Position numbers and translations under genes: made by a program. Shown here in pieces: positions 3,751 through 32,514 of a DNA stretch of 64,000 bases. The DNA comes from Rhodosorus marinus CCMP1338. Lineage: Eukaryota > Plantae > Rhodophyta. The notes beneath the pieces were generated by a model, which made no database searches, had not been told where the DNA came from, and saw only the letters and a program-made list of their open reading frames with translations. How positions within the stretch are numbered: position 1 is the stretch's first letter; the number at the start of each line of letters is the position of its first letter. The DNA lies in assembly GCA_029953675.1 (NCBI GenBank), contig JAMWBK010000005.1, positions 310,001-374,000 of the forward strand, given 5' to 3'.

Positions 3751-6366
3751 ATGTCTTTCTCGTTTGGTGGAGGATCGTCCAGCAGTAGCTCCGGAGGACA
3801 ATTCTCCTTTGGAGCTTCGTCAGCGCAGTCAGCGGGTGGAGGGTTTAGCTTTGGGAGCTCCACGCCGCAGTCCACAGGTGGTGGCTTGAGTTTTGGTGCG
3901 AGTTCGGCCCAATCGGCATCGGGCGGGTTTAGTTTCGGAGGTTCTTCTGCACAATCTGCAAGAGGAGGATTCAGCTTTGGCTCCCAAAAGTACGCTAAAT
4001 CGTTTCCATATTGCCGATCTGAGTTGATGCGAAAAACGCAACCGACTTAACGTTAGCTTACCATTCGCGTTCTCCAACTGCAACAGTGCTGCAGCCTCAA
4101 CAACAGCTCAGTCGACAGGGTTCGGTGAATCATCGGCAGGATTCGGATCTTCAGGAAGGTAGGATATCACTTTCTCGCCTATGGATTTCAATTTTATTTC
4201 GCAGGTCGCTTCCGTGTTACGTTTGCGTAATGAAGCGCGTTGAGTTGCGTTTGTTCCTTTGGCCTCAAGTCTCCCGCAACCCCATGCACGTCTAGTTTTT
4301 CACATTGCAAACTAAACCGCTTGAATCTGCTCTGTTCGTAGCTCCCTCTCGTTTGGTGCAGGACCTCAGTCACAGCCCTCCGGATTTGCGACTCCCCCAG
4401 CGGCGAACTCTGGTGGATTTCTGTTTTCTTCCAGGTAGGATGTTAGCGCTATTTCACAAGCTCAGAAATAGGCTCCCCCGGTGTACCTAATAGAAGACAA
4501 ATTGTTTCGGAAACACACTAGCAGCAGCGCAAGCAAGCCGTCCACACTGCAGTTTGGTGCTGCGCAGTCCAGTGCGATTCCTTCTCAAAGTGAGTTTCTC
4601 TGAAGTCTGTTTGCCCTGTAGAATGCGCTATAAGTTTATGTTTCCATGACCTCTACACAAAACGCTCGGGAATTGAGAACGAGTTGTTTTTGCTCCTCAC
4701 CTCAGCGGCCGCTGCTGCTCAGAGCAGCAGCAATACAGGATTTGGATTCTCGGGAGGCTTAAGTTTTGGGGGCCAAGGTACGGGTCTTGCTCAGAGCACA
4801 TCCTCAACTGCCACGAAACCGGCTGAGGCACCGGCTGGATCCGCCCCAACCCAGAGTACATTGGGTGGTGCTGCGAACGGTGCAGCCGCACCGGCTGCGG
4901 GAAATCTTTTCGGTGGTCTGAAGCAAGCATCTGCCGCGCCCACAGCGGCGACGGGAACTGGCTTGAGCATACCGTCTGCGACCGGAGCGAACACGAGTTC
5001 GGCAAGCACCCCGTCGATCTCCTTCGGCAATACAGCCGCAGCCGGGGCATCCACCAGTGCACCGTCTTCTGCGACTACTAGCGGGCCGTCAGGGTTTACG
5101 TTTACCACGTCGACGAGTGCCGCATCTGCACCTTCAACTGCAGCTTCATCAACACCATCCGCGAAATTTTCTTTTGGAGCTACAGCCGCAAGCACGGCTC
5201 AGCCACAAACAGCAGCGTCGTCGGCAGCACCCGGCGCTCCTGGGTTTTCATTTGGAGCCGCGCCGACCACGAGCGCGGCAGCGTCCGTGTCTGGCACAAC
5301 GTCCTCCACTGGAGCCCCCGCCCAGGGTTTCTCGTTCGGAGCTGCTGCGGGGTCGAGCTCTGCAGCGCCAAGCCAGCCGACCGCCGCTGCCGGGACCTCT
5401 ACAAGCACGTCGGGCCCATCGCTTAACTTAAGTGCAGCTGCTCCAGCCCAGTCTTCCCCGGCTGCGCTCAGCACCGCTCAGGCCCCTGCGAAACCTCCAG
5501 AAGTCCCATCAGAGATTAAGGAGCTCAAGCTTGATGAAATCATAAACAAATGGAGCGAACAGGTAGAAGAGCTTGTGGAGCAGTTCAGAAAGCAGGCGGT
5601 TCAGGTTGGGAGATGGGACAGACAGATTGTAACTAACGAGGACAGGTAAGGGATCCTTCAAAATCCAAGGGGTTCAAACGAGTGCGAGGCTCATGCTGGC
5701 GACTAACGGGGATTCATGCCGACTGCCAGAATACTTGCATTGAATCAGGATCTACAAACACTGCAAGGTTCCCACCGCGAGCTCGAAATGAATCTTGACA
5801 CAGTTCTGGCGCAGCAGACGGAGCTCCATAACCTGCTGAACGCGCTTGAAAAAGAGGTGGATGCTACGTTTGGCACGAGTAAGTACGGCGCAAGGACCAG
5901 AGCTTCTCGGCTAGGGCTAAAGCGAGGCTCTTGTGATCACCCGCAAAGGCGGATCTCCAGGCCTGGCTCCGAGAACAAACGCGGACAAGGAGAGGGCGCA
6001 AACACATGAACTGGGGTTGGGAATCATGCGAGAACTGGACTCGATGGCTCTGACTCTAAGAGACGTCGTCCAGGAGATAAACCAAAGCCAGGTAAGCAAG
6101 CGGCCTCCAGGAATCAAGATAAGCCTTATAGTACGGAGCGACTTTCGTCTGATCATATCATTGGTTTGCAATTCTTGCAGGCTCCAGAAAGCTGGGACGT
6201 GCTTGGACAGATTGTCAGCGTTCTGAATTCTCACATGAACGCTTTGCAATACCTTGACGAAAGTACGGGAAGCGTGCAGAAGCAGATCCATCAAGTTGCG
6301 AGACTTGCCGAATCTACGAAGAGGGAGGCCGATGCACTGCGGGGCCGTCGCTACGGGCATACATAG
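3751..6366 (+). CDS. NUP62: FG-nucleoporin Nup62/Nsp1, multi-exon
   Basis: N-terminal FSFG repeats, an Ala/Ser/Thr-rich linker, then Nsp1_C coiled coils (LDEIINKWSEQV..FRKQAVQVGRWDRQI; LELNLDTV-like LEMNLDTVLAQQTELHNLLNALE; VLNSHMNALQYLD). GT-AG introns link the ORF fragments. Confidence 0.93.
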
Positions 6367-13075: not shown

Positions 13076-14921
13076 TCACGACCGGCTTCTGTTCAAGCTC
13101 ATCGTGCTCCTCTTCCGTAACTCACGAGCCCAGTCTCCTGTGTCAACGTTCGAGTCAAACACACCCAGCCGATATCTCAGCTTCGCTTTGCGGCTGATGA
13201 AGCTTGTTCGACTGTCCCAGACACAGCTATAAGATCCGCAAGTCAAATTCAACAGGAGACCCTCTATCATCTGCCCGTTCGCGGAGGACGTCTCTGGCCC
13301 ATATACAACCTCTCCCGAATTGGCTCGAATCTGAAATGTTACGTCACGGTTGACAGCTTCAAACTGAAAGGCAAGGACTGACGTCTCCGAGTCTACTTCA
13401 ATCATTTTCTTAAAACCGTTAGCCTTTGGGATCTCAACCTGCGTTACAGAGCGAGTGCCCAGGAAGAAAAGGTCAGGCGGGACCTCATCAAATCTCCTAG
13501 CCTGCGGATGCCAGGAGGTCCAACACTTTGCGAACAGTGCCCACCTCCTCCAGGGACGTTTCCGCAGAATTCCCGCTAACCGACTTCTGTGCTTCCGCAG
13601 CCGTGACGAAGAACGGTGATTGCGTCGTAACGTTGATCATAAAATCAATATACTTTTTGGACTCCCGTGCGTAAATTTCCATGCCTCTCTTCAACTGGGC
13701 TACCGCGGTCGCAATCGTGTTCTGCTTTGCACAATCATCATCTTTCTCTTGCAGGATCTAATTTCAAACAGAACAAAGATGGCTCAGCGAGAAGCGAAGC
13801 AATACCCTAATTTCCTGGCTCCAATGGAGTTGAGATCCTACGTGTAAGATACATGCCACTAGCAAATGTGCTTGATTCGCAAACGCGGTTTGTCGGTATA
13901 AATTAGGACCATACTTCAGTCGGAGTTCTTCAGTAGGCCCGTTCTTGGAGTTTATCTCTCTAGCAAAGTCCAGCAACACCTGCGTTCCAGGGGAATACAT
14001 TAGAGCTTGTCCTAGTCTGAGGGTTGTGGTAGAACGCGTGCGCGGTTAAAGGCGACTTACCTCAGGGCATCCACTGATCATTCTGATCGCAAATTTTTTC
14101 ACACCGCTTTCCGTACTAAGGGCTGCAAGACTGGCTCGTCGCTCGAACTGTTGTTTCCAGTACAGATCGTATTTTTCCGCCAAAGTACCCCCATTGCTCA
14201 GTAGTGTCTCCACTGCTGCTTTGTACTGAAGGTGCACAAGAGGGACGGGATCAATGTCCGCAATACGATCCAAATGTGTTTGAAGACAGCGACGGATCCC
14301 CCAACAGGTGGATTCCAACGCCATTCAGGAGATTCAATACCTTTGTTTCCTTTCTTTCGCGCAAGGAGTTGATGACTTTCTTTCTCCAGTCATCGGGCAG
14401 AAACTCGTCCAGAATTCCGTTGACCTTGTCAGCCTGAAATTTCTGAAAACGTTCATAGCTATCATACGATTCGATGGCGAGAGATATGATAATGGACAGA
14501 TGGTCTGTACAAGTCCAAAAAAGATATGGAAAACAAAATAACGACGCGAAACGCAAGTTTAACTTCCCGGTTTACATTGGTACACAAGCGCACTGCTCCA
14601 AGGATTCCGATCACCTTTCAAATCAGTTGGAGCAAGGGCCTTTGCTATTTCAGCCTTCGACGCAACCTCCTCACATTGCCATCTGTTATAATACATGTTC
14701 AGATCAATATGCTTGGGCAACTCCACAACGAGCTTGTCCCGATCCACCGCGTCCCAAACATCCAGCTTCTCGCACATACCCTCCATCCCCTTCCTCGCCT
14801 CACCAAACTCATCAGGAAGTTCATCAATTGGAAAATCCTTATAAAACTCCCTCAAGTACTCTCTTGTTATAGGTACCAGAGTCGAGTTGGTCTCACCAGC
14901 GCTACTACTCCTCAACGCCAT
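13076..14921 (-). CDS. Conserved protein with C-terminal GOLD domain (similar to the plant At5g01010-type family), multi-exon
   Basis: LVPITREYLREFYKDFP, KHIDLNMYYNRWQCEEV, GGTLAEKYDLYWKQQFERRASLA, QVLLDFAREINSKNGPTEELRLKYGPNLY, SPFFVTA and GSYSCVWDSRTSFISRK match my recollection of that family. Confidence 0.75.
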
Positions 14922-15939
14922 CTCCACTCAAACCTCACTCCCAAACAAAGTCCCCCTCCCCCCAAAACCCAGCAAAAAAATCAAACTAACGAACTTCTAA
15001 AGCTACCTCTTTCCAAACTTCATCCTCAGGATCCACAATTCATCCAACACTGCACCGGTACAAAGACATAAAATTCATAAACCATTTCCCACAAGTATAT
15101 AGCCAACGGCCTCTTCTATCTTCTCTGCACACAGCCAGAAGAGCCTCTCCACCCCGACGGTTAATCTTTTTTGCACAGCCTGACAGCTTGCAGTTCGTAC
15201 TCTAGCATTCCTAAACCAGCTGCCGAGCAAAAAGTCAGATACTGGCGTTTTAGCGTCACAAATAAAATTCAGTCAATATATATATTTCTCTCAAAATATA
15301 TTGTTTCCAAGACAATAATCAATCAATTATTCGATGACACTAAACCAGTCGGAAAAGGAATCCCTCCAACACGACAGAAGAGGACAAAAAAAACTTCCAA
15401 AAAACTCCAATCCATCCGATTCCGTCAGGAATCGCAAAACTATTGATAGTGTCACCATCTAGTGCTCATCTAAACAAAAAATATTTCCCGATGTTGGTTG
15501 CAATTATCTCAAAATCAAAGGTGACACTGTAATCCGATTATCAAGAGATTTCCTTATCAATCAAAAAAGAATACGATGATTTGATTGGTTGAGAATCCCG
15601 CCCCCAGAGTGTACACTAAAGCTGTTCAGTCGCTGGAACCCTCGAACCCCTATATAAAATGTATTTTTGATGAAATTGCGAGCAATGTCCGACGAGAGCA
15701 AATTTTAGGACAAAAATTCTTATATTTGGGGCCTTGATGACTAGAAAAATGAGAATTTGTCTTGCTGATATATATATTTCCAAATATTCGTTTTTCACCG
15801 GAATTCTGGTTCTGTTGAATAGGATAAAGTTTGGCTAGAGTTGTTGGCCCCCGAGAGGGAGCCAGGTTCGTATTGGCGGTGCTTGCACACCGCTGGAGCG
15901 GCCGCAGCGTTGGATGTTGATATGAGCCCATGTTCGTTT

Positions 15940-16171
15940 CCAGCTACCCTCTCCCGGAAATAACATCGATGCAGCCATCGTAGTTCAGATACGTGAGCAT
16001 CTGGAGCGTCCATCTCCCGAATGTTGACCTGTTCAACAAAAGCTTTTCGCATCCCCAATTCCTGCGGCAAGGCAGGGAACAGGTCGGCATTCGGGAGATG
16101 GACGCTCCAGATGCTCACTTATCTGAACTACGATGACTACATCGAGGTTCTTTCCGGGAGTAGATAGCTGG
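15940..16171. repeat. Long inverted repeat / fold-back: 95-bp arms (15940-16034, 16077-16171), 42-nt loop
   Basis: Base-by-base alignment gives 85/95 matching positions, no indels and a 31-bp perfect core (15993-16023). Confidence 0.95.
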
Positions 16172-17330
16172 GCCCCAGCACTTGTTATCCAAAATAGTAG
16201 CCCGGATTGTGAGAGATGATAGCATGCGACAAGTGATTGTTTTCGACTGCATGGTGTTCTCGTATAATTGATTGATTATCGTGGTGGAAACAAGGAGTTT
16301 TCAGGAAAACAAAACATATTGCCATATATAGCACTCCCCAACGAACATTCGGCAATGGCTTTGGAGGGTCTTAGAGTACCGAGGTGGGTTGAGCTTGGGT
16401 GCCTTGGTCCGTGCAACGTACCAATGATTGGAAGTGGTTGCGGCTGAGAATGAAGTCCATTACTCAACTTACGTAGCGCAAGAGCAAGCAGGGCCTCTCG
16501 GGTGTTGTCCGTTTGTACGAATCTGGGCGATTAAAGCCACCCAGAACCTTGCTTGCAGTGCTCTGCAAGATATCCAAAAAAGAGCCGAATAGGTCTGGAT
16601 ATCGACAACTGAACGCGCGCCTACCCGCTGATAATTAAATAACTTCGAAAACTTACGACCAAGCATAGAGCTTACTTCTCCACGGGATTCGTTTAAAACC
16701 TCTCCCAGGCCGTTGGAAACCTAAAGCTATCTTCCCCCGTGGATCGTTACAATCTAGGAAGACTTTAACAACAAACACAAATCCAAACACTCCCTCCTAC
16801 CGCTTCACAATTATCCCCACAACCACAGCAGCATATACGAGGATCACCGGAAAACCTTATATTCCAGTTTAGCAAGATCGTTAGCAAAACGTTCAATTCT
16901 TTTTAAAAACTAGACAGCAAAATGCAGATTGGAAAATACTATCTGCCTCTTGATGAAAACACGTTTCCGTAATCTAATTCAATACAGAACCGCCGGTTAT
17001 TGAAAACGCTGCGGTTTGATCAGAATCAGAAGTTTTTGTACCTGCTGCAAAAGTATTTATTAAGTTAGAATACAATAACTAATAATTCCGAATCTCAATT
17101 GGCTGGCTTACTGTGCATACTTTCTGTTTAGGACACCACGGTAAATATACAAAATTGCTCGAATGCAGAGTGTTCTTTGGCCACTGGAGCAGTTCATTCG
17201 CAAGACTATCACAGGAGAACGCTGCAGGATCGGAAGACTATCTAGTTGAAGGAGTACTGAAGTACACGCAACGTTGATGAGGCTCCACATCGATATGGCA
17301 TTTGTGGATTGGTGAACTAGGGTTGATGCC

Positions 17331-17681
17331 CTAGAACGGGAGCTCAGTGTTTCTGGAACCAAATGCTGGATGATCGGAATCTAATCGCACGTTAAGGGAC
17401 ATTTTCGAGGAGTAAACGCTTAATAAGAAGCTCCAAGACGACTTGGCTCTTCGAACAGCGGACTCTCTGTCTATGACTTTGCTCACCCTGGCCGGTCTAT
17501 CCAGATCTAGACTCTTAAACCGTCCATGAGACTTCACTGGAAACCTCTGGCCAAGTCCGTCTAACCGCCGAACTTTGCTGAAGTCCCAAAAAAACCTTCT
17601 CATGGGCTCTCCATTCCACTGCAAACCTGTCCTCCACAGAGTTGCCGTCGATGACCACACCAGAGGAAGAGAAACGTCCAT
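17331..17681 (-). CDS. Hypothetical protein (possible, ~116 aa from the first ATG)
   Basis: Open frame in otherwise gene-free space, oriented away from the AT-rich spacer shared with CtpA. No recognisable motif. Confidence 0.2.
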   Translation of the reverse strand: MDVSLPLVWSSTATLWRTGLQWNGEPMRRFFWDFSKVRRLDGLGQRFPVKSHGRFKSLDLDRPARVSKVIDRESAVRRAKSSWSFLLSVYSSKMSLNVRLDSDHPAFGSRNTELPF

Positions 17682-18029
17682 CAAATAGTTCCCTAATAGT
17701 CCCACATCCCAGATTCAACATACATCCATTAACTTATTTTCGAAATTCTTATACTAAGATCCCAAACCAAAACATCATCACCAAATCCCTCTTGAAAATC
17801 CTATATTTTGACCCCAAAGTTTTGCTCAACTGATGAATTTGTTTTGAAAAAGCCTATTTGATGAATCGCGTCAAAAAGGGGTAAAAACAATCATCGGTTA
17901 AATTTGTTTTGAAAATGGTGATGATTTTGATATGAATCACATTGGGCGATAGGAGAGCATCGTCATCTCACCATCTCAGCAAGGAATATATACATTTTGG
18001 TTTTGCTTATGATTTATAAATGGATGGAA

Positions 18030-18063
18030 GATGGAGATGGAGATGGAGATGGAGATGGAGATG
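18030..18063. repeat. (GATGGA)5+ microsatellite upstream of CtpA
   Basis: Read directly; it gives the DGDGDG run in ORF 17997-18401. Confidence 0.9.
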
Positions 18064-18149
18064 TAGGGCGTAGTGGGATGAGCCAATTTTTGTGTGTGAG
18101 TGAAGACGGGATTATTAGAATCCGTGATTGGAGCTGTCGAAAGGTTTCA

Positions 18150-20173
18150 ATGTTTTGTTACATAAGTGGATGGAGCAATATACAACGTGTGCGTCGACGT
18201 GGTGGTATCGTGTGCGTTTATGGAGAGCGCCGTACGTGGCGGAATGTGGCGAGCGGTTTGGCGCTTGGGGTAGCGCTCTTGAGCATGCCTCCCGGTCTCG
18301 CTGATCAAGTGGCATCAGCACGGGAAAGTCCGGTTGAAGTTGCGCAGGCTATGAAGGAGATGGATATTAAGCTGAACAAGTCTATTTTCGAGGAGGCGTA
18401 AGGTTTTCTTTCATGTGACTCCACCCCGGATGCACTCTGCGATTCTCATCATGTCGTTGCTGTCTGACGTTTAGGTGGGGTGCCGTGTATACTATGTATT
18501 ATGATACTACTGCTGGAGAGCGATGGTCAGCTGACGACTGGATAGATGCTCGGAGTCATGTATTTGATTCGGGAAAGCTTGTTTTCTCTTCAAGGGAGAG
18601 AACACATGACGCAATAAGGGACATCGTCTCCGCTATTGGAGACCCTTACACGAGATTTTTGACTCCTGAAGAATACAGATATGAGCTTGAAGCTCGATCT
18701 GATAAAGTTTTGAACAATGCTGGCATCGGCCTGCAGGTACGAAGGGATGAACAACAAGCCCCTGTTCCTCTAACTTGGAGCTGGTCGTCTTCTCATTATG
18801 AGAGGTCGGGTCTCTAAGCTCCACCTTTTCTGTTTCATCGATTCACGCCGATTATACATAACAGTTGGTGGATCCTTTTGACGGTGTGGATGACTTGCAG
18901 ATCCTGGCTCCTCTCCCCGAGTCTCCCGCGGAACGAGCAGGTATCCATCCTGGTGATTATTTAGAAGCTATTGACGACATCGACATAGCCTATGCGCATA
19001 TGACCCCCGACGAAGCGATAGCCGTTCTTCGAGGACCTGAGGGAACTCCCGTGTCGCTCACATTGCGCACGGATGCCAGCGACCGTAAGGAGATTCTTCT
19101 CAACCGAAGACCGCTCTCAATGAAAGCAGTGCGATCCGAAGTCGTCGAAAATGAGCTCGGGAAAACAGGCTACGTCAGAATTCATTTGTTCACCTCCAGA
19201 GCGAGAGAGGAACTGGTACGTCACTGAAACCCTACAGGAAGTCCTCGGTGACGACAGGGATTGCGGCTCTGACCCGATGATATCTGAACAGGTGGACAAT
19301 ATACGAAGTATGATCGTAGATGGTGTGGATGCAATAGTAATAGACGTGCGAAACTGCTTGGGTGGTGTCTTCCAGGAGGCTCTCGTAATTGCTTCAGCGT
19401 TTATCGATTGTCCAGATTGCGTTTTAGTGCAAACTCTGGATGGAAACGGTATGATCAAGACCTGAGCTTTTAGAATCAATCTTTATGGCGTCCATATTGC
19501 ATGGCCACGTTCGATAAGATTACCCAAACGCGAGCGTCTACCATAATCTTAATCATCGCTCTTCGATTCTCGCCATCGAAAAAAAGGAATCGAGAGAAAC
19601 CATATCGTTGAGAAACAGCGCTGTGTTTTGCCCGGAGTAATTGTACCAACGAATATTCCCATGGCAGTGCTGGTGAACGGCGGAAGCGCGAGGTAAAGAG
19701 TAGCCGTGTTGGTCATACTTTTGCGCAGTGTTTCGATCACGACGAGCTGTTGGGTGCAGGGCCGAAAAGCACAACCATCTTTCCAATTGTGCCGAACTCC
19801 CTGGCCCTGCATGTATCAGCTTTTTTGCTGAGATAAGAAACTAAGTCAAGTCTTCGTTTCGACCTCTTCCTTCTACAGTTCCAGCGAGGTGCTCGCAGTT
19901 GCTCTCAAAGAGAATGGTCGGGCGACGCTGATTGGGGAGAGGACGTTTGGGAAGGGGCTCATTCAGCATTCGTTTGTTCTTCGTGATGGAAGCGCAGTTA
20001 CTATGACCGTAGCAGAATATGTAACGCCGCGACGTCATCAGCATCTACAGAATAAAGGAGCCAGACCGGATATCGCTTGCAGAGCAGCACCTGCAAAGTC
20101 GGCAACGGAGGACCTGTGCGTAGATCGGGCGAGTAGGGCGCTTCTACTACCCAGACAAACAGGAGTCTTGTAG
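18150..20173 (+). CDS. ctpA: Plastid C-terminal processing peptidase (S41A, CtpA family) with PDZ domain, multi-exon; start codon uncertain
   Basis: GDPYTRFLTPEEY, PDZ (PESPAERAGIHPGDYL), GYVRIHLF, IVIDVRNCLGG, catalytic VLVNGGSAS/SSEVLA (spliced) and TFGKG, AEYVTP. N-terminus resembles a bipartite transit peptide. Confidence 0.9.
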
Positions 20174-32471: not shown

Positions 32472-32514
32472 CCTTCGTCTAACAATCTCTTCGCCTTCGT
32501 CTAACAATCTCTTC
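32472..32514. repeat. 22-bp-period tandem repeat (2 copies) just upstream of ACY1
   Basis: ccttcgtctaacaatctcttc occurs twice. Confidence 0.85.

Follow-up and report, generated by a model that had tools for sequence, protein, structure and literature searches.

A 232-nt imperfect palindrome in a divergent intergenic spacer of the red alga Rhodosorus marinus: a non-coding orphan hairpin and its possible origin by inverted duplication

According to a model reportedly put forward by Allen et al. in 2004, young MIRNA and hpRNA loci of plants are born by inverted duplication. Loci of this kind include MIR161, MIR163 and IR71 of Arabidopsis, and miRNA precursors in the form of long hairpins are also found in Chlamydomonas; for the plant and Chlamydomonas loci small RNAs, a dependence upon Dicer and, usually, a homologous target have been documented. 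The criteria by which such loci are recognized, said to have been formulated by Axtell and Meyers in 2018, call for a foldback of no more than ~300 nt containing a 20-24-nt duplex with no more than 5 mismatches, no more than 3 of them in asymmetric bulges. Imperfect palindromes and fold-back duplications also arise spontaneously, by template switching during replication or by the repair of hairpin-capped breaks, and imperfect palindromes in intergenic DNA are common in eukaryotic genomes. The one described below is to be regarded as ordinary until shown otherwise.

The structure described here, a 232-nt imperfect palindrome in the nuclear genome of the red alga Rhodosorus marinus CCMP1338, shares characteristics with each of these systems, as well as with MITEs and foldback transposons. 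As in young plant MIRNA and hpRNA loci and the Chlamydomonas precursors, its stem of ~95 bp is ~90% paired, free of bulges and closed by a small loop within a total length of 232 nt, and it is intergenic and folds from both strands; unlike those loci, it is known from sequence alone, and a search for a source or target gene was negative. Like MITEs and foldback transposons, among them Stowaway, Tourist and hAT-derived MITEs, the hairpin is small and non-coding, its inverted repeats span nearly the whole unit, and it forms a discrete intergenic block inside another unit bounded by inverted repeats. In contrast to these elements, it has no TSD, no second copy in 64 kb and a GC-rich rather than AT-rich composition, and the R. 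marinus genome is almost without classified DNA transposons. Resemblance to spontaneous fold-back duplications lies in its single copy within the window, its unique spacer, the lack of a TSD, its non-coding nature and the divergence of its arms by point substitutions; such duplications normally copy local sequence, however, whereas the composition of the hairpin block differs from that of its flanks, and no junction microhomology was recognized at its ends.

Rhodosorus marinus, a red alga as the original prediction had presumed the source to be, belongs to the Stylonematophyceae, and the nuclear assembly of strain CCMP1338 (GCA_029953675.1) comprises 31.2 Mb with 8,392 genes and 15% repeats (PMC10250338). 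The assembly was produced from ONT reads with NextDenovo and polished three times by Pilon with Illumina reads, and genes were annotated by BRAKER trained on RNA-seq (PMC10250338). The window, which here denotes the whole 64-kb stretch that was analyzed, is taken from contig JAMWBK010000005.1 (3.19 Mb), positions 310,001-374,000; the hairpin lies 326 kb inward in that contig (325,940-326,171), and all coordinates below are those of the window. A protein encoded by a single exon near the hairpin, when looked up exactly, was found on this contig only, and the protein collection contained no ORF of the locus derived from a different assembly. The FASTA files contain no soft-masking by which annotated repeats would show. 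The hairpin and its neighboring genes are as follows.

14921, minus strand: CDS start of a 449-aa gene (public annotation)
15940-16034, no strand: left arm of the hairpin, 85/95 complementary to 16077-16171, GC 52.6%
16035-16076, no strand: loop of 42 nt, non-palindromic, with a CCTGC/GCAGG mini-stem and the palindrome AAAAGCTTTT
16077-16171, no strand: right arm of the hairpin, 95 nt, pairing with the left arm
18285, plus strand: CDS start of an S41/PDZ peptidase gene (public annotation)

Because the annotated coding sequences begin at 14921 (minus) and 18285 (plus) and none is annotated between these starts, the hairpin (15940-16171) falls within a non-coding spacer of 3.36 kb that separates two divergently oriented genes, their start codons being 1.0 kb away on one side and 2.1 kb away on the other. 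Analysis of the spacer for coding content yielded a uniformly negative picture. When all six frames of 15780-16360 were compared with 5.8 billion proteins, the R. marinus annotation included, no match was obtained at E <= 10, and all stretches elsewhere in the spacer that stay open for 45 codons or more gave no match at E <= 1 in the same collection. As a test for a source gene, this search sees near-identical coding matches only, sources in UTRs or introns lying outside its reach. Likewise, a codon-usage scan trained on the clear coding ORFs of the window returned log-odds of 0.10-0.34 per codon in most windows of the flanking exons and of no more than 0.08 over 14950-18250. The lack of protein matches and the flat codon scan therefore argue against a hidden conserved gene, a remnant of a transposon protein or a near-identical coding source of the arms, and a coding origin of the hairpin was rejected on these grounds. 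The original prediction had placed the fold-back in a gene-poor interval and had found no recognizable gene to explain its arms; both statements hold, the former in that the spacer contains no annotated gene, coding signal or protein homologue and the latter by protein search, codon scan and annotation alike.

Base-by-base comparison of the two arms, each of 95 nt and separated by 42 nt, reveals 85 matches, 10 substitutions and no indels (89% complementarity), with a perfect core of 31 bp at 15993-16023 and a longest near-perfect stretch of 48 bp that contains one mismatch; the stem has no bulges. When a 47-mer of the left arm was searched against the 64 kb, its sole other match was the right arm, with 1 mismatch. 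Folded as RNA, a 252-nt region containing the hairpin attains -171.3 kcal/mol on the plus strand and -177.0 kcal/mol on the minus strand, while dinucleotide shuffles fold at -72 and -79 kcal/mol, respectively (SD 5; z = -20.0 and -20.2), and none of 200 shuffles folds as well as the native RNA. The energy of the hairpin folded as DNA is -98.5 kcal/mol (z = -20.7). Given z-scores of about -20 and the finding that, nested repeats aside, no other inverted repeat of the 64 kb exceeds 24-25 nt, the hairpin is not a product of chance. The original prediction is thus upheld in its description of 95-bp arms with 85 matches and no indels, a 31-bp perfect core and small loop stems (cctgc/gcagg and AAAAGCTTTT), and in its judgment that the structure is far beyond chance.

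The hairpin also stands apart from its surroundings. Specifically, the GC content of the 232-nt unit, loop included, is 52% versus 43% in the rest of the spacer, the coding sequences of the window ranging from 46 to 53%, and it is sharply bounded: inverted similarity is lacking between the 104-112 nt next to the two arms (z = -1.1), and when the halves on either side of the centre are aligned globally, the 95-bp arms are all that is recovered. These two results led to rejection of one large decayed palindrome as a simple model of the locus. The only activity that the hairpin sequence predicts is a physical one, in that it could form an RNA stem of ~95 bp from either strand or a DNA cruciform.

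The ten differences between the arms (10.5% divergence) consist of 6 transitions and 4 transversions. As originally predicted, and now confirmed by direct comparison, four of the mismatches become G:U pairs if the minus strand is transcribed and two if the plus strand is. This 4:2 split is uninformative, however, because each transition yields a G:U pair on exactly one strand, such that six transitions amount to a coin toss. Similarly, random placement of 10 mismatches over 95 positions leaves 31 or more consecutive matches in 16% of trials (P = 0.16) and 48 nt or more with a single mismatch in 6% (P = 0.06). The perfect run accordingly gives no sign of a protected duplex, and conservation of a duplex core is not significant, clustering at P = 0.06-0.16 being in keeping with random placement. 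Each strand has one reading frame that runs open through the arms; read in the plus-strand frame of the left arm, all arm differences alter the amino acid, and in the open frame of the other strand most do so. In this pattern the mismatches look neutral.

Searches for relatives of the hairpin among known RNAs and in other sequence collections were likewise unproductive. At a permissive E-value, the central 94-114 nt align to the Rfam families MIR1444 (RF00956) and MIR162_2 (RF04303), with scores of 34.1 and 29.5 bits on the two strands versus a gathering score of 80 for the former and of 27.9 bits versus 103 for the latter. Since these scores are sub-threshold and MIR1444 is matched on both strands, the similarity is that of generic hairpins and does not indicate family membership, and a known RNA family for the hairpin was rejected. 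Over the whole 64-kb window no Rfam family reached its gathering score and no tRNA genes were found. A 24-mer from the core of the hairpin is absent from JGI metagenome contigs and from IMG/VR contigs. The hairpin is thus a real, non-coding orphan, matchless in the window and in the Rfam, protein, JGI metagenome and IMG/VR collections, and within the 64-kb window it is apparently single-copy.

The hairpin is in turn enclosed by a second inverted repeat, the elements of which, together with a candidate third copy of the repeated unit, are listed here.

15274-15355, no strand: left arm of the outer repeat, 83 nt aligned at 73.5% identity with 16240-16321 in reverse complement
15771-15827, no strand: weak candidate for a third copy of the outer-repeat unit, matching 16276-16330 in reverse complement at 61% identity
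16240-16321, no strand: right arm of the outer repeat, 68 nt from the hairpin, the left outer arm being 584 nt away

The outer repeat scores 52.5 bits, versus 20.1 +/- 2.3 and a maximum of 32.6 for 200 dinucleotide shuffles, and has the core GTTTCCA..ATAATCAATCAATTAT; no further copies exist in the 64-kb window. Judged by sequence, the outer inverted repeat is older than the hairpin. The outer pair is positioned off-centre with respect to the hairpin, and the 584-nt and 68-nt spacers cannot be aligned with one another. A 9-bp TA-rich candidate TSD of the outer repeat (CAATATATA / CCATATATA) was rejected, as it does not fit the register in which the repeat is aligned and candidates of this kind turn up at 6% of random pairs. 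The segment at 15771-15827 lies nearly on the symmetry axis of the hairpin; its status as a third copy of the unit is doubtful, its similarity (BLAST E = 3.2; z = 4.8 versus shuffles) having been picked post hoc. The history of the locus is thus a compound one, involving either inverted duplication or nested insertion.

Several further analyses bear upon whether the hairpin gives rise to small RNAs. When 21-mers of the hairpin were compared with both strands of the window, allowing up to 4 mismatches, 3 matches were obtained, all at 4 mismatches, where ~3 are expected by chance (an estimate made by hand). Two TATA-like motifs were located outside the ends of the hairpin.

15771-15779, plus strand: TATA-like motif TATATATTT (motif match only)
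16323-16331, minus strand: TATA-like motif CTATATATG (motif match only)

With respect to the silencing machinery, Chondrus crispus is reported in a review to encode both DCL and AGO (PMC12026948), at least one class of red algae, the Cyanidiophyceae, has lost RNAi and lacks both Dicer and Argonaute (PMC12770821), and red algae are not among the miRNA-bearing lineages listed in stringent surveys (PMC5381526). In the literature searched, Rhodosorus is nowhere mentioned in connection with Argonaute, Dicer or RNA silencing.

Taking these data into consideration, the reading that we favor, tentatively and at somewhat less than even likelihood, is that the hairpin represents an orphan, non-coding inverted duplication of ~95 bp around a 42-bp spacer, decaying neutrally and without demonstrated function. 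Such a unit would have been born at the DNA level, through a fold-back or template switch during replication or break repair, or through insertion of a fold-back fragment, and subsequent neutral drift would have brought the 10 substitutions, ~5% per arm; the case for neutral decay is built on only 10 differences in a single strain. Consistent with an inverted duplication are the structure itself and its significance, the restriction of arm differences to substitutions and a placement of mismatches compatible with random, as well as the empty protein search, the flat codon scan and the lack of an annotated gene, and finally the absence of a TSD and of any other copy in 64 kb in a genome of which classified DNA transposons make up 0.03%. 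Against it, the sharp edges and a GC content of 52% in a spacer of 43% make the unit resemble an inserted block more than a duplication of local sequence; moreover, the second inverted repeat that encloses the hairpin could signify a nested mobile element, and the 4% of the genome that consists of unclassified short repeats could hold the family of the unit. The main rival on the question of origin, considered less likely, is a non-autonomous DNA transposon, MITE-like or of the foldback type, of which the hairpin would be one copy; its TIRs would make up nearly the whole element, and it may nest in an older ~1.05-kb element delimited by the outer repeat. A size of 232 bp and a hairpin that occupies the entire element are typical of MITEs, and the discrete, sharply bounded block, which differs from its flanks in GC content and lies within a second inverted repeat that is itself significant, would fit such an insertion; terminal inverted repeats are present, but trivially so, the arms reaching both ends of the unit. 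The repeat content of the genome can be cited on either side. Unclassified repeats number 6,757 pieces (4.0%, mean 186 bp), so a short unclassified family may include the hairpin unit, and some hAT fragments are present; those fragments, however, 35 pieces or 0.03%, are the only DNA transposon class in the RepeatMasker table, in a genome that carries 9% CRE/SLACS-class LINEs and 1.3% LTR elements (PMC10250338). The unit is also not AT-rich, and its 24-mer core is missing from the metagenome and IMG/VR contigs noted above. Neither the hairpin nor the outer repeat has a second copy in the 64 kb searched, which, at 0.2% of the genome, excludes only families of more than ~1,500 copies. Lastly, the hairpin ends read CAG...CTG and lack the 8-bp TSD of hAT type and, in keeping with the original prediction, which had seen no TSD, a systematic search at both pairs of ends (boundary offsets of +/-12 nt, lengths of 3-10 bp) returned no candidate exceeding what 300 random pairs of positions yield.

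Compatible with either origin, yet improbable, is the proposal that the hairpin is an expressed hpRNA or proto-miRNA gene, the Pol II transcript of which would fold into the 95-bp stem, be cut into 20-24-nt duplexes by a Dicer-like enzyme and be loaded into Argonaute. The plant-type pri-miRNA/hpRNA geometry seen in the original prediction is indeed present: the stem agrees with the structural criteria for plant miRNA and hpRNA loci (232 nt in total, 31-bp core, 48 bp with one mismatch, no bulges), although any young inverted repeat would pass the foldback criterion. Additionally, both strands fold equally well, the TATA-like motifs point inward from ~160 nt outside each end (as motif matches only), and at least one red alga, Chondrus crispus, has DCL and AGO (PMC12026948). 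Weighing against small-RNA production are the RNA-seq-trained annotation, which calls no gene at the hairpin but reports no non-coding transcripts; the lack of a near-identical source or target gene in the protein collection and of a target in the window; the lack of a strand-biased G:U excess and of a significantly conserved duplex core; the generic nature, on both strands, of the Rfam scores (34 and 28 bits versus 80 and 103); the loss of RNAi in Cyanidiophyceae (PMC12770821); and the stringent surveys, which accept no red algal miRNA (PMC5381526). Because the tests of RNA function gave no positive support, the case for small RNAs is a purely geometric one; nothing in these tests refutes an RNA function of the hairpin, nor do they support one. 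The alternatives weighed in the original prediction, namely hpRNA, foldback element and MITE, are the appropriate ones. Were the hairpin transcribed and diced, it would constitute the first stringently supportable hairpin-derived small-RNA gene (hpRNA or proto-miRNA) in a stylonematophycean red alga, an outcome to which we assign a rather low likelihood, and an RNAi pathway would operate in a deep red-algal lineage. If processed, the hairpin would provide a concrete site at which to ask whether small RNAs are genuinely produced from hairpins in red algae, an unsettled question, and in practice it offers a cheap, well-defined target for read mapping in existing data sets (PRJNA778797). Far less probable than any of these is an artefact of Nanopore assembly or polishing, such as a fold-back chimeric read. 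Fold-back chimeras are known in long-read libraries, ONT reads were the input to the NextDenovo assembly, and the contig is evidently not free of odd local duplications, since the window contains at another site a perfect tandem duplication of 2 x 266 nt. Such artefacts, however, have identical arms and are usually of kilobase scale or situated at contig ends, and ONT errors are mostly indels, whereas the arms here are just 95 bp long and differ by 10 substitutions and 0 indels; it is because the arms are short, their differences are substitutions only and the site lies deep (326 kb inside 3.19 Mb) in a contig polished three times with Illumina reads that an artefact is considered highly unlikely. 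Nearly as implausible is the idea that the hairpin is a pair of inverted pieces derived from a protein-coding gene or from organelle DNA (NUMT/NUPT). A GC content of 52% resembles that of the coding sequences of the window, one frame per strand is open through the arms, and NUMTs are reported to be abundant in the R. marinus genome; conversely, no protein is matched at E <= 10 in any frame, no arm difference is silent in the plus-strand frame that stays open in the left arm, and the mitochondrial minicircles of R. marinus are reported to be without inverted repeats, for which reason a NUMT derived from minicircles was set aside.

Beyond the hairpin, inspection of the window disclosed a small number of other features. 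No ORF longer than 331 aa is present in the 64 kb, and LINEs (9% of the genome) therefore appear to be absent from it. The perfect tandem duplication mentioned above occupies 1670-2201 (2 x 266 nt, 100% identity) and is either a very recent duplication or an artefact of long-read assembly or polishing; a second perfect tandem repeat, of 2 x 22 nt, is found at 32472-32514. A 321-aa ORF on the plus strand at 4684-5649 is rich in Ala, Ser, Thr and Gly and contains FG/FSFG-type repeats followed by a charged, coiled-coil-like tail, a combination that resembles an FG nucleoporin of the Nup62/Nsp1 type. At the plus-strand border of the spacer, the ORF at 17997-18401, in which the start (18285) of the S41/PDZ C-terminal-processing peptidase is annotated, is open in frame from 17997 and contains at 18023-18063 a (GATGGA)x6.7 microsatellite that would encode a GD repeat; since a targeting presequence is expected, the annotated N-terminus of the peptidase may be too short.
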